Part shown: one piece after another, positions 23,516 to 62,741 of the stretch
How the letters are laid out: every line of letters starts with the position of its first letter
Position numbering within the stretch: position 1 is the first letter of the stretch
Source of the DNA: Ophelia neglecta
Lineage: Eukaryota
Direction of reading: 5' to 3'
DNA length: 64,000 nucleotides
Assembly (NCBI GenBank): GCA_965285935.1
Contig: OZ260663.1
Coordinates: 98,146,001 to 98,210,000, forward strand
The notes under the pieces: generated by a model
Told to the model about the DNA's origin: nothing
The model's database searches: none
The model's input: the letters and a program-made list of their open reading frames with translations, nothing else
Translations under genes and position numbers: made by a program

Positions 23516-26500
23516 ATGGCAGCTTTACTACGCATGTCTGTGTATCTGATGATAGTCTTAAGCACTGTAGGCGTCAGTTCAGGTATTTATTACTAACAGT
23601 AAATTGAATATTGTTAACTTTAATGTGAGCGCGTTCTATTTGGAACTCGGCTACGAGAATGTAGCATAAATAAGTCCGTAATACACGTCTCTGTATTCGC
23701 TGCTTATTTGCCATAGGGTCCTGTCGATATGGGTTCGGCAATACGTGTGCCTTCTCATGTCGATGTGCCATTGGTAACTGCAACACTGACACAGGTGAGT
23801 GTCTGTCTGGAGGAGAATGTCAGAGATGGAGTCCGGGAGCTGTACCGTGGACTGGACAGGGGTGTAGGATAGGTCAGTGTTACACGCTACACTGATAGAA
23901 AGGTTATCAGCCTATAACCCGGCTGATGTTCAAGTGCAGACCTACTCGCTAGTTCATTCATATTATTTAACTATAAACAACCGTCGCCTGCACACATATA
24001 TTTATTTTATATGAATATCCATTTAATGATTAGGAGCCATATCTCTAGTCTGATTCTAAAAGTTCTATATCAATTCCGTGAATATCTTGACTCAATTAAC
24101 TGTTTGTTCCAAAGCCTGGCACAATGCAGCTTGTGTTTCGTTTTTACTAATAGATCGCAGTTATGTAGCATCAGTTCCTTTCATGACTTAAATCCACAGA
24201 CCTTATCTGAACACATATTTATGTTAAATGCATTTCCAGGCATATACATATTTAGAATAGGGTGTCAATGATCTTGTTTCTCAAATGTCAGGATTGAGGC
24301 TCCGGTACCTGATTGCACCCTAAATCTGATTCTTTACTACGTATATTGTTCTCGGCACAATATACGGCAATACTTGATTCGAACTTCATTCGTAGGTAAC
24401 GTGGCTATGCACAAAAATGCCAGCCAAAGTGGTATCCGAGATGGTTATGGTCCTGACCGTGCTGTTGATGGAGCAGTCGGGAAGTCATTAGCAGATGGGA
24501 AGTGTTCTTATATAACACAGTTACAAGGCAGTATCTGGTGGATGGTGGATCTGGGACAAATGCACGTCGTGTCCAGTGTATTAATTTATGGGGAACAGGG
24601 TAAAAGTTAGTGCCATGATAACATATAATGAATTGAGTATGTATCGTGTAGTAACTACCGGACAGTTCTATGTTGTGTATGTCTCTTTAACTTACAGCAA
24701 AATTGGATCAATACATCATTTTATTCGGAAATTCGACTGTAGTAGAGAGCAATCTCTTATGCGGGTCCAGCGGCAGCGGGGACAACTCTCATTCAGACTT
24801 TACTTCTGTGACCTGTGACCCCGAAAATCAAATGGTGGGAAATAAAGTGATTCTAAGGTCGTATATGACAACAGACATAATCTTGTGTGAGCTGGTTGTC
24901 ATCGGACGGAGATTTATAGGTATCACCACATGTATAGCACTTCCTGTTGATGCGATAAAAACACATACATAAGAAGTAAAAGTTTTTTACTCATATATTG
25001 TTCTGTGTAACTCAGATTGCTCCTTGTGTCCAGCGACCAGTACGTGTGATGACTACCAAGGATGTAGTCAATGTCCCGAGAGATTTAGGCTGCCGGACTG
25101 TAAAGGTGGCCTGCCGTACAATATAACTGAATTATAAATCATGCATTTCTGATAAACATTTGTGAATCACTCAACTAGCAATGTTAATGAATTTATATTC
25201 TCTATAATAAAGCAAAGCCACGAAATAATGTTTGTTCATTTAAGAATGCTCAGACGGCCTGGGAGGGGAGAACTGCTGTAGTCCACACTGTAAGGACCAG
25301 GCTTGTGTAAAGGAGACAGGAGTGTGTTCTAATGGGTGTATCTATACATTGACTGGTGTGTGGTGGATTGGAGACAAGTGTGATGAGGAATTACGTGAGT
25401 AATGCCTACTCGAGAAAATATATAAAAAAATCCATTATTTCCTTAGATGTTAATGCACTGGCATTTGTCCAACGAATGAAGGTTTTATGGGGATATTATT
25501 GTATCATTTGTTTAAAGCTGTGATGCAGTTCGGCAATAGGGACACTGTAGACAGAACTCCGGTGGAGGTAACTACTAATTCTGTGACGTGGCGCTGGAAG
25601 GAGGGTCTAAATATTTCAAAACAGGCTGCTCCTTTAGTGGGTTATCAAATCGTCTACCGTCAGCCTGGTAACTCAAACTGGAATCTAGGAGTCGACATAC
25701 CGTACAGACAGAGAGACTGACAGCAGGGGACTGTCAGCCAGCTACAGCCTGACACAGAGTACGAGTTTAACCTGATGGCGTACAGGAAAATGGGTGGGAC
25801 GGTACATACTGGACCCTCATCTTACGTTGACTCATTATTAACTAATGAAGGACCTCTCCTTGTTCGCACGTTAGGTAAGTAACCTTTTCTTGACCGATCC
25901 TAGGTGAAATAATAGTTGGTTTTTGTTCCTTGTTTTTCGGCTCTCTAAATTTGGCTGTGAGCTTCTATGTTAAATTAGACATGCCATCCGTTGGTATGTA
26001 TCTGGATCAGATAATAATATAGTTTATTATATCATGATAGTTTAAAATTATTCTCTGAGCCAGACTCGGCATTCACACCATTACTAACGACAACACCATC
26101 AGAGCAAGCGTCCCCGACCACTACAACGAGTGTAAAGAAGACGGAATCAGGACCACCGACCTCGCCAGTAGACAAAAATATGACCAATGGAAGTCCTGGG
26201 TCTGAGTTCGTAACAAGGCCGTTGTCCGTCGGACTCATAGCGGGGGTTACCGTGGGAATCCTACTGCTTCTAGTTATTGCAGCAGGTATTGCATTCTTTC
26301 TCGTGAGGTCAGTTGACATGCTCGATACAGACCCTACTGCTTTAAAAACAACACGTCTTCGATAATAATTTGGCAACCAATGTTAACATAAATGCATAAT
26401 TATATAAACACACCTTTAGGCGAAACAAAAATCCTATAGATGAAGTATCAGATGAGGAAATAACATTTCATTTGGAAGAACAACGACCTACCACTCCAAG

Positions 26501-60028: not shown

Positions 60029-62741
60029 TTACATCTCTTCGGATTCGCCGTAAGTTATGTGTTTGCCAAATCGTTGAAGCCCCTCATAAGGGTGTTCAGG
60101 GTTGACATTTTCTGCAAAGTTGTAAACGCACAGAGTAATATCTCATATACTTAATAAGGCAAACAAATTTGATATTAGGACCATGTATGTTATAATGTAT
60201 ATATATGATATAAATATAGCAAAGTTGATACCGTAGCTTGTGCCTGTTGTGCCTATGGTCTCGTAGAAATGGACATCGCCTGTGGATGATGTGGGTGATG
60301 TATCAGTCCCTATGCCCGGACTGCCTGTGTCTGAGGGAAGGTCCACCCCCAGATACAACTGTGCATCGTTGTTGTCCATAGCTTGGCTTGATACCATGGC
60401 ACCATTTGTAGTTTCGATGCTGCTTCCAAAACGTTTACTTAAGAAAGAAAAACAATACATTACATTTCGAATCCTCGTCATAACAAAATTCTGTGCTAGG
60501 AAAGAAAAGAAGTAAATAGAGTATGTGTGCATAATACTATAATCATACATTTTTATTTTACAAGAGTATATACCCAATACAGAAGAAAATAATCCCAACA
60601 ACAAAAACTGTAGCAGTCAACCCGACAGTAGCTGCTGCTATCAATCCGATGTTACTTCCTTCGGCATCAGCACCTTCCTGGAGGCTCGTGAGTGCCGAGG
60701 TCAGTATAGGAGTAGTGGCCACAGGCAGCGACCCTGAAATGTTTAGTTATTATTTATGCGTAAATCGCATTAATTACAGGTTTGAATTTTCTTATTAATC
60801 ACACCTCTTGTGTGTCCCCTTATGCGCTTTTGTATTTCTGTATTCTGTAGAATAGAAATATTCTAAATTTGATATCCAGATTAAAGGGCTTCTGCTATGT
60901 GTTGTGATACGGCCATATGTTTGCATTCTGCCCACAGTATGTATTGTTTGTGAAATTTTACACGATATTTAATGAGTGTGTTGCTTGCCCGATGTATCGT
61001 TTCTTTTCTGACAGCTATCTCAATAAAGAACGTATAAGAGATTCTAGAAATACAAGTCATTGAGATTGTAACCTCAAATATCTTATTTCTAAATTGTAAT
61101 TGTCTAATTCCATGATAAGTCCTCCATGTCAGCTTTAGATTTTTGTTGCTTAAGCGCCTGTGTTGTCCACAGTTATGGTGTATTTTGTGAGAAAGCGTTT
61201 TAGGCTCAGCCAGTGCCTCTTGCTATTAAGCAAGAGGCAATGTCTTGGATAACATTTTGTTACACCTACCATCTGATGTAATCTTTCATTGGCTGAATGA
61301 AAACGGGAATACATTATTGTTGCTTGGAGTATTTGTAGTTACAAAGGTAATTGATATTTTAGTTTTTGGGCCTGGGTGATTTCAATGTATAAATATCTAG
61401 TTTTTTCGGCTTTTCAGGAGGTAAATTGAACGGGATAATATTTGTGCCCTAATGGACATTGCGGTATGAAGCATGAATATCAATATTACTTCTAAAATTT
61501 GGTTCCTTAGCTTACCTATGGATTTGCTTCCGATAACATCGATCTGGCAAAAGTTGGTCTTTGAGCCGACATGAGCCCTCAATGCTACATATCTTCCAGT
61601 TATGTTGTTTTCACAAATCGCCTCAGTATATCGGGGGTTAGCGTCGTTAACAATTGCACCAGACTGGCAGTATTCATAATCTATCGGCTGACTTGAGTTT
61701 CCTACCAGGATTGTATATCTAGTTTGTCCACGAACTATATAAGAATAGGAAATGTGTGGCAAATTAGGTAATTTTAAATTCCTAATAACTCACTCGTTCA
61801 TATCAATAAATAGTTTATTGCGTTATTTGACCTTCTTTTTACATGTTTAACTCCAAGCCGATAAAAACGTACTTATACCTCCTATCAACAAAACTTTATC
61901 AATGAGATACAGATTCCCAAGATCCACCATCCTCCAGGCAGTATTATCTGAAGGTTGTGATACATAACACATTGTGGCCGATGAGACGCCATCGATTGTC
62001 TGCTCCGTCGCATCGCGATCTGCAGCACTCTGTGTCGACCAGCTGCCCAGCGCTACATTGTCTGAATCAGATATTATACAGCCATACTGTTGTTTTTGGG
62101 CGATACAGTAAATTTTCTAACAGATAAACAATTAGTTGTTAACTTCAAGCTTTGAAAATAACCGAATAAGTTTATGCGGTGATGCTTTTAAATTCAGCTA
62201 TCGTCCACCTTTTCTTCTCTTTATGATAACTGACTTTCCCAAATATGTTTTCGGATATTTGTGAGTTGTCCCAAAGACGATTTCATTCTTAAGACACTGC
62301 TACAACCTTTCTATCTCCTGTTAGGACTTTCAGTGTACGTTTTACTTTCAATTAAACTACCGTGCCACTTTTATAATAAATGCCCAACATCAATCTATAT
62401 ATAGTGATACACCACAGCTAAAGACAAATAAAAAGTCTTAAATCGTCCATTTATGTGCCCGAAATCATCATGAGCCAATACCCACATGCCTACAAACACG
62501 TCAATATATCAATCTCCCAAACAATAAATAAACTAGTTAACGTATGTATTTGTATATGTTAGGTGATAATGATATATTCTTGAAGTGTATATCTTACTCA
62601 TTCCGCATTCCTGCTCATTCCATGGTTCAGAACCTGGACTCCAGTTCTCACAGTCTACCCCAGGTAGACAATCCCGATTGTTTGCTTCGCAACTACATTG
62701 GAATGCATACAGCATACGGTCATCCCCATAGCGACAGGAAA
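60029..62741 (-). CDS. Short type-I receptor B: EGF-like exon, F-type-lectin-like domain, stalk, TM and tyrosine-motif tail; the 5' exon was not identified
   Basis: Minus-strand exons 62741-62598 (SCRYGDD...ECGM), 62061-61879 (NVALG...AWRMVDLG), 61734-61516 (GRYVALR...FCQIDV), 60733-60574 (TM LIAAATVGLTATVFVVGIIFFCIG), 60437-60232 and 60111-60029. The frame is open throughout. The tail reads FYETIGTTGTSYENVNPEHPYEGL...TYGESEEM. Confidence 0.82.

Follow-up and report, generated by a model that had tools for sequence, protein, structure and literature searches.

A multigene family of Ophelia neglecta joining related lectin-like ectodomains to a tandem tyrosine phosphatase or a tyrosine-motif tail: a candidate paired-receptor architecture

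When neighbouring genes share their extracellular part and differ in their cytoplasmic part, do they form a paired receptor system, or have duplications brought them together? A stretch of 64,000 nucleotides in the 762-Mb genome of Ophelia neglecta (C5:98,146,001-98,210,000, C5 being contig OZ260663.1 of assembly GCA_965285935.1) raises this question. This whole stretch is called the window here, and positions follow its own numbering unless C5 is named. An all-against-all six-frame comparison of its segments found four loci with homologous exons, two built as receptor-type protein tyrosine phosphatases (PTPs; R1 and R2) and two as short receptors with a tail of tyrosine motifs (A and B). An earlier note on this DNA had proposed that they may constitute an invertebrate paired system. 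As regards architecture, the proposal is supported at the level of the family, in which alternative modules sit on related ectodomains, have been swapped repeatedly and are under purifying selection, and it is not supported for the adjacent pairs of the window. Going by the gene sequences, this is probably a family with paired-receptor architecture, in which related ligand-binding domains would be coupled to two kinds of cytoplasmic cassette with opposite or complementary phosphotyrosine signals.

The genes lie in the order R1 (about 23.5-30.6 kb), A (36.6-40.6 kb) and R2 (48.2-58.4 kb), all on the plus strand, and then B (64.0-60.0 kb), which runs on the minus strand and converges with R2. 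A short gene does follow each phosphatase gene, as the earlier note had it, but not in a shared orientation. Splice-site analysis showed that all four begin with a signal-peptide exon ending in phase 1, that a Cys-rich exon (E1) and a pair of lectin exons (E2, E3) come next, and that E1, E2 and E3 are phase 1-1 in each of the four genes, which agrees with the claim of shared N-terminal exons and equal intron phases. The signal-peptide exons are of two kinds, one found in R1 and R2 and the other in A and B. After E3 the long form (R1 and R2) continues with two EGF-like exons, an FN3 exon, a transmembrane (TM) exon, a juxtamembrane exon and the exons of two PTP domains (D1 and D2); this layout had been predicted and is borne out by the exon models, by Y_phosphatase scores above the Pfam cut-off and by an fn3 score of 24.4 bits for the FN3 exon (cut-off 25). 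The short form (A and B) passes from E3 to a TM exon with the same phases as in the long form and then to two or three tail exons, and its tails of 89 aa with three Yxx[ILV] motifs in A and 95 aa with four in B match the roughly 90-95 aa expected. Ectodomains with the two EGF-like modules and FN3 are called R-type and those without them S-type. All ectodomain exons are phase 1-1, and each TM exon starts in phase 1 and ends in phase 2. Phase 2 is also the starting phase of the juxtamembrane PTP exon and of the exon that opens the tail, so that a swap of cytoplasmic cassettes by recombination within introns keeps the reading frame.

Such swaps were sought in 24 loci of 10 kb, annotated with the exons of the window. 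Within C5:96.5-98.8 Mb the PTP and tail cassettes were each found joined to both R-type and S-type ectodomains. The locus L001 encodes a signal peptide, E1-E3, EGF-like modules and FN3 of R2 type (66-82% identical to R2) and continues with the TM exon and both tail exons of B type, with no PTP. Eleven genes, L002 among them, have an R1-type ectodomain followed by a tail. Nine of them make up a tandem array (96.56-96.71 Mb), and the two that stand apart from it, L021 (96.58 Mb) and L022 (98.29 Mb), keep an R-type TM exon before the tail. The reverse combination occurs in L004, where an S-type ectodomain (60-87% identical to B) and an A-type TM exon are followed by juxtamembrane, D1 and D2 exons. 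The junction between modules therefore sits on one side of the TM exon or on the other. When the ectodomains of 32 genes (389 columns) were placed in a maximum-likelihood tree, PTP and tail labels came out intermingled: R2 and the tail-bearing L001 are sisters with 100/100 support, the tail gene L022 groups with the PTP genes L023 and L024 with the same support, and in the S clade A (tail) comes first, then L004 (PTP), then L003 and B (both tail). Given its well-supported branches, the tail label must have changed at least five times and the PTP label at least four times. The approximately unbiased (AU) test rejected the grouping of all 12 R-type tail genes in one clade (difference in log-likelihood 247, p 6e-5). 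By these results the ectodomains have been exchanged between cassettes, or subjected to equivalent gene conversion, at least four or five times.

The relatives of opposite type are therefore to be looked for across the family and not next door. The best ectodomain match of opposite type was 84% for R1 (with L002), 73% for B (with L004) and 56% for A (also with L004), and R2 is 73% identical to the tail-bearing L001 as against 61% to the nearest other PTP gene. Across the family the best opposite-type identity was 73-85.5%, whereas between the long and short genes of the window it was 48-50% in E1, 24-28% in E2 and 28-34% in E3. A phylogeny of the lectin domain had been suggested as a check; the ectodomain tree and the identities speak for close opposite-type kinship family-wide, and the identities per exon against the adjacent pairs; the idea that long and short neighbours are each other's closest relatives does not hold, their real opposite-type relatives lying elsewhere in the cluster. 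We also considered the short gene as the dedicated partner or substrate of the adjoining receptor PTP and rejected it, the neighbours being distant kin and R1 a pseudogene.

The genome was searched exon by exon. At least 150 matches are listed for the FN3 exon (from 538 candidates) and at least 150 for the D1 catalytic exon (from 452); E2 gave 130 matches, the E3 of A gave 73 and the tail exon of B gave 29. Counted from the listed coordinates, a super-cluster spanning 3 Mb (C5:95.8-98.8 Mb) contains about 70 D1 catalytic exons, and the genes with a tail there number about 35. C5 has further clusters at 5.4-6.9, 99.5-101 and 103.4-104.6 Mb, and C7 and C16 carry clusters as well. Many groups of matches with equal scores recur about 100 kb apart, which indicates recent duplication of whole segments, and the long-short adjacency recurs mainly because whole segments were duplicated. 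Five more genomic copies of A (E3 94-97% identical) make six A-type copies in all, and the tail exon of B has about nine more copies (84-91%). The family is huge, young and lineage-specific, and consists of type-I membrane receptors under birth-and-death evolution. Besides, the minus-strand stretch C5:98066000-98080000 carries, by coordinates only, an E2 (98079723), an FN3 exon (98078196) and a tail exon (98076500); 6.6 kb downstream of the tail exon come part of a juxtamembrane exon (98069794) and then a D1 catalytic exon (98067974). A single gene may carry both cytoplasmic cassettes here, or the PTP exons may belong to a truncated neighbour.

The ratio of nonsynonymous to synonymous substitution rates (dN/dS) was calculated pairwise by the Nei-Gojobori method on whole exons among R1-type genes. 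It was 0.37-0.40 in E1, E2 and E3 (0.39-0.40 in the lectin exons), 0.14 and 0.26 in the EGF-like exons, 0.44 in FN3, 0.51 in the tail exon and 0.04-0.38 in the PTP exons, with 0.10 in the D1 catalytic exon. The ratio is below 1 in every module, which shows purifying selection on PTP-type and tail-type genes alike, and these whole-exon values among R1-type genes gave no sign of diversifying selection.

The phosphatase arm is best represented by R2 (48225-58380, plus strand), which is apparently intact: GT-AG introns can join all neighbouring exon cores, and no stop interrupts the reading between the signal peptide and the D2 catalytic exon; the position of the juxtamembrane acceptor and that of the 3' end are approximate. 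Its exons are the signal peptide (48225-48291), E1 (48422-48574), E2 (48801-49010), E3 (49375-49599), the two EGF-like exons (49680-49769 and 49937-50086), FN3 (50173-50535) and TM (50656-50938), followed by the juxtamembrane exon from about 54547, D1 up to 56380 and D2 up to 58380. The PTP exons tested scored 22.7-54.4 bits with Pfam Y_phosphatase (cut-off 20.9), and the nearest PDB matches of the D1 exons were LAR/PTPsigma, PTPalpha/epsilon and CD45. D1 of R2 has the motifs WLD and HCSAGIGRTG, the catalytic Cys-X5-Arg and the general-acid Asp being kept, and the D2 exons have HCRDGASRSG and WPT instead of WPD, i.e., the general-acid Asp is gone. The hallmarks of a tandem PTP, a D1 with C(X)5R and the general-acid Asp followed by a second PTP domain, are all present, and the coding sequence is uninterrupted across the modelled exons of R2 but not in R1. 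A low-stringency search for tail-like sequence in the introns of R1 and R2 found none, giving no sign of alternative 3' ends there.

The tail arm is represented by two intact open reading frames (ORFs) whose introns are all GT-AG. Receptor A (36563-40584, plus strand, 324 aa) has exons for the signal peptide (36563-36632), E1 (38223-38360), E2 (38698-38877), E3 (39015-39233), TM (39600-39696) and tail (39879-39979, 40283-40366 and 40499-40584), and receptor B (60029-63993, minus strand, 334 aa) has exons for the signal peptide (63993-63924), E1 (62741-62598), E2 (62061-61879), E3 (61734-61516), TM (60673-60574) and tail (60437-60232 and 60111-60029). No charged residue was found in the TM segments of A and B. 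An in-frame NNYMEIY in an intron upstream of A's tail exons (40161-40187) echoes the C-terminal NDYMEIY of A.

The tail motifs were surveyed in 15 tail-bearing genes. LYERV is kept in 13 tails and YE[ST][TI] in all 15, the motif T[ES]Y[GE]N[VI], which forms across the junction of the last two tail exons, is found in 14, and the Tyr of NPYEGL is again kept in all 15. The last three tyrosines are 9-10 residues apart, and three of the genes end in YSEYEEI. The third motif matches the consensus TxYxx[V/I] of the immunoreceptor tyrosine-based switch motif (ITSM), a match of sequence only. B-type tails carry YETI-x6-YENV and R-type tails YEST-x6-YGNI, the next pair having a spacer of just 5 residues. 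Among these 15 tails no canonical match to the immunoreceptor tyrosine-based activation motif (ITAM), YxxL/I-x(6-8)-YxxL/I, was found, the pairs being ITAM-like only, and none of the tail motifs is a canonical immunoreceptor tyrosine-based inhibition motif (ITIM); Pfam gave no family match on the tail exons. From the conserved motifs we infer that the tail is a candidate phosphotyrosine docking module.

What these receptors recognise depends on the shared ectodomain, which had been described as an F-type-lectin/F5-8C domain. A profile built from 18 E2 exons and compared with PDB matched FBP32 (E 2.8e-8), the Streptococcus mitis lectin domain Sm-hPAF (E 3.2e-8), eel agglutinin (AAA, E 1.1e-5) and SpX-1 (E 1.5e-5), and nothing else of note beyond F-type lectins. 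Pfam F5_F8_type_C_2 scored 16.5-22 bits on the half-domains, below its cut-off of 27.8, and F5_F8_type_C was likewise below cut-off. The description therefore holds for the first half-domain (E2), the only one for which F-type lectin similarity is established, and not for the second (E3), which has no relative in PDB; the exon E3 of A, compared with a library of 1.8 billion proteins, matched only one bacterial cadherin-like repeat protein, and spuriously. The fucose-binding motif of the F-type lectin family is HX24RXDX4(R/K) (PMC5712786), and it is absent in the E2 alignments: where it has His, R-type domains have Tyr and S-type domains Ile or Val, with no RxD about 25 residues downstream. No sugar ligand can be proposed, because this triad is missing. 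At the site of the cation motif hhDGx, the residues are AVDG plus A or Q in R-type domains, IDGV in B and SEGL in A, the last position not being the small hydrophilic residue of the consensus. E1 has an invariant core of six Cys (eight Cys in R-type genes) and an EGF-like look, and Pfam found no family match for it. Judged by these matches, the domain is F-type-lectin-like, divergent and with a non-canonical site.

R1 (23516-30630, plus strand), which had been listed as a phosphatase gene, carries two in-frame stops as well as a deletion of 10 bp and is a pseudogene. Its exon models comprise the signal peptide (23516-23582), E1 (23717-23872), E2 (24396-24605), E3 (24698-24919), the EGF-like exons (25016-25105 and 25245-25394), FN3 (25518-25874), TM (26064-26307) and then the D1 and D2 exons; the D1 exons are recognised by Pfam Y_phosphatase and their translations show WPD and HCSAGIGRTG. 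All three lesions are on the plus strand: an in-frame TGA in the FN3 exon (25718-25720), where R2 has TGG (Trp), an in-frame TAA in the last D1 exon, in the D1-D2 linker (28945-28947), at a position that is Gln in all nine sampled paralogues showing that exon, and the deletion in a D2 exon between 29877 and 29878, which shifts the frame relative to L008, L018 and R2. The three lesions are common to a twin copy, L005 (C5:97434695-97444694), which lies 734 kb upstream and is 99.4% identical to R1 over 10 kb, introns included. The TGA was also checked in short-read contigs of three runs (X1-X3) from one sample, in which no alternative letter was found. One contig of run X1 joins 25603 to 25721, so that 117 nt (25604-25720) are skipped in frame and the TGA is removed; its shorter side has only 23 letters and may come from a paralogue, and it is not relied on. 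In the segment of the twin the order R1-then-A is kept, with an A-like E3 at 97460142 and a spacing of 23 kb as against 15 kb in the window, and a second D1 catalytic exon with 100% amino-acid identity lies 8.8 kb past the twin (C5:97449617). On this evidence R1 is dead, and R2, A and B look functional.

Upstream of R1 there are decayed remnants of further family members, each exon relic having in-frame stops: a PTP D2 catalytic exon with three stops (11138-11269), an E1-like exon (20240-20368) and an E2-like exon (22576-22665), all on the plus strand. Between these relics lies a Ty3/gypsy-type long terminal repeat (LTR) retroelement (11354-19483), with direct repeats of 300 nt that are 100% identical and 7830 nt apart and a 1444-aa ORF (14381-18712) containing reverse transcriptase, RNase H and integrase domains. 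At 2135-3954 a GC-rich stretch (0.51 against about 0.39 around it) holds two ORFs, of 252 and 357 aa, that adjoin each other and have no Pfam match. Tandem repeat arrays at 10163-10478 and 33335-33618 appeared as self-matches in the six-frame comparison, and simple dinucleotide-type repeats are present at about 42150-42400 and 63540-63650.

How would such a family work, and could its layout be explained otherwise? In the reading that we prefer, the PTP forms would strip phosphate, and tail forms, once phosphorylated, would provide docking sites for SH2 proteins. Such a family would play the part that paired receptors have in vertebrates, probably by recognising self, non-self or microbes through glycans. 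The window genes are adjacent through segmental duplication, not as dedicated partners. The tail genes might instead be by-products of birth-and-death evolution, i.e., derivatives of receptor PTPs in which an unrelated 3' end has taken the place of the lost phosphatase exons, serving as decoys or orphan lectin receptors with no functional link to the PTP forms, their adjacency and similarity being due to segmental duplication and gene conversion. The cluster is indeed rich in recent segmental duplicates, as the R1 twin and the equal-score groups show, the window itself holds a pseudogene and exon relics, and its neighbouring genes are only distantly related. However, the tyrosines are each kept in 13-15 of the 15 tails though these tails are just 37-51% identical to that of B, the dN/dS of the tail is below 1, A and B are intact ORFs, and the tail cassette is joined to at least three ectodomain/TM contexts, which is hard to explain without selection for the combination. 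We regard this explanation as unlikely.

The remaining alternatives concern what the tail does. If its Yxx[ILV] motifs were sorting signals of AP-2 type, the short forms would be endocytic or scavenger lectin receptors that internalise glycoconjugates with no phosphotyrosine signalling; YKEL, YEGL, YETI and YMEI do match the YxxPhi sorting consensus, the ectodomain is lectin-like, and no motif is a canonical ITIM or ITAM. Against this stand four conserved tyrosines regularly spaced at 9-10 residues, a conserved Thr at -2 of one of them (TxYxx[VI]) and, in some tails, a terminal YEEI, the classical Src-SH2 optimum, in a family whose alternative cassette is a tyrosine phosphatase. The spaced tyrosines, TxYxx[VI], the YEEI ends and the PTP alternative together point to phosphotyrosine signalling, and a purely endocytic role appears quite unlikely. 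Signalling could also be inhibitory in both arms, TxYxx[VI] recruiting an SHP-type phosphatase in the manner of an ITSM or ITIM, so that tail and PTP forms would dampen by two routes. The fit of the junction motif to the ITSM consensus and the lack of a charged TM residue hinting at an activating adaptor would suit this. Yet B-type tails have YETI-x6-YENV, all tails have three tyrosines at ITAM-like spacing and some end in YEEI, so recruitment of a kinase fits as well, and two inhibitory arms seem to us very unlikely.

Several points weigh against the paired-receptor architecture that we favour. The sole cross-species search, made with exon E3, yielded no real match. The lectin domain, lacking the fucose-binding triad, points to no particular ligand. 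The ITAM-like pair of B ends in V, the -2 positions misfit an ITIM and no tail motif is canonical for either; the tail dN/dS of 0.5 is rather relaxed, and YxxPhi motifs can double as sorting signals. The sample of 24 loci is biased to R1-type genes, S-type being represented by four genes, and gene conversion among ectodomains, without any functional pairing, could account for the discordance between ectodomain and cytoplasmic part.

Vertebrate immune systems use paired receptors again and again. The present family resembles KIR, LILR, Ly49, Siglec and SIRP in being a clustered multigene family with birth-and-death evolution, in which related ectodomains carry alternative cytoplasmic ends and have been interconverted repeatedly. 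It differs in that the presumed dampening arm has its own tandem PTP in place of an ITIM recruiting SHP-1/2, the other arm has its own tyrosine motifs in place of a charged TM residue and an ITAM adaptor, and the ectodomain is lectin-like with EGF and FN3 modules and not Ig or C-type lectin. The opposite-type identity of 73-85% is lower than in many KIR pairs. To our knowledge, in every described case of paired receptors the inhibitory member borrows a cytosolic phosphatase via an ITIM. With the classical tandem receptor PTPs (LAR/PTPsigma, PTPalpha/epsilon and CD45) the long form shares the type-I topology, FN3, a D1 with CX5R and a WPD-type motif and a D2 that lacks the general-acid Asp; its F-type-lectin-like and EGF-like N-terminus, the hundreds of copies in tandem arrays and the sister genes with a tail in place of the PTP set it apart.

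The likeness to F-type lectins such as AAA, FBP32 and the membrane-bound furrowed of Drosophila lies in the first half-domain (E about 1e-8), with a WW.VDL core and a possible hhDG-like cation motif; the fucose motif is absent and the second half-domain unmatched. A review of the F-type lectin family does not list a phosphatase among the co-occurring domains, and neither an F-type-lectin-like domain on a receptor PTP nor a paired family with a phosphatase arm was found in the literature searched, the coverage of which is incomplete. The tails are similar to those of SLAM-family ITSM receptors and of ITAM receptors such as Draper/MEGF10 in having several spaced tyrosines, one TxYxx[V/I] and pairs at ITAM-like spacing, and differ from them in lacking a strictly canonical ITAM and, by Pfam, any homology of tail sequence. 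Among invertebrates, the allorecognition complex Alr of Hydractinia is likewise a large clustered receptor family, polymorphic-looking and with tyrosine motifs in some tails. It differs in having Ig-like domains and no phosphatase arm.

Going one step further, the family might be an invertebrate paired system of new design, with a tandem-PTP arm against an arm with an ITSM/ITAM-like tail. Lectin-like cassettes would be shuffled through phase-compatible introns, and each specificity would be read either as "dephosphorylate" or as "be phosphorylated" in glycan-based recognition of self, non-self or microbes. We put this forward tentatively, as possible but doubtful. The ligands and the purpose of receptor PTPs are often obscure. 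If the proposal is true, a built-in phosphatase swapped against a tyrosine tail on shared ectodomains would be an independent invention of paired-receptor logic, and receptor PTPs would gain a testable role in recognition. With its size, recent duplicates and pseudogenes, the family lends itself to work on exon shuffling and gene conversion in receptor diversification.

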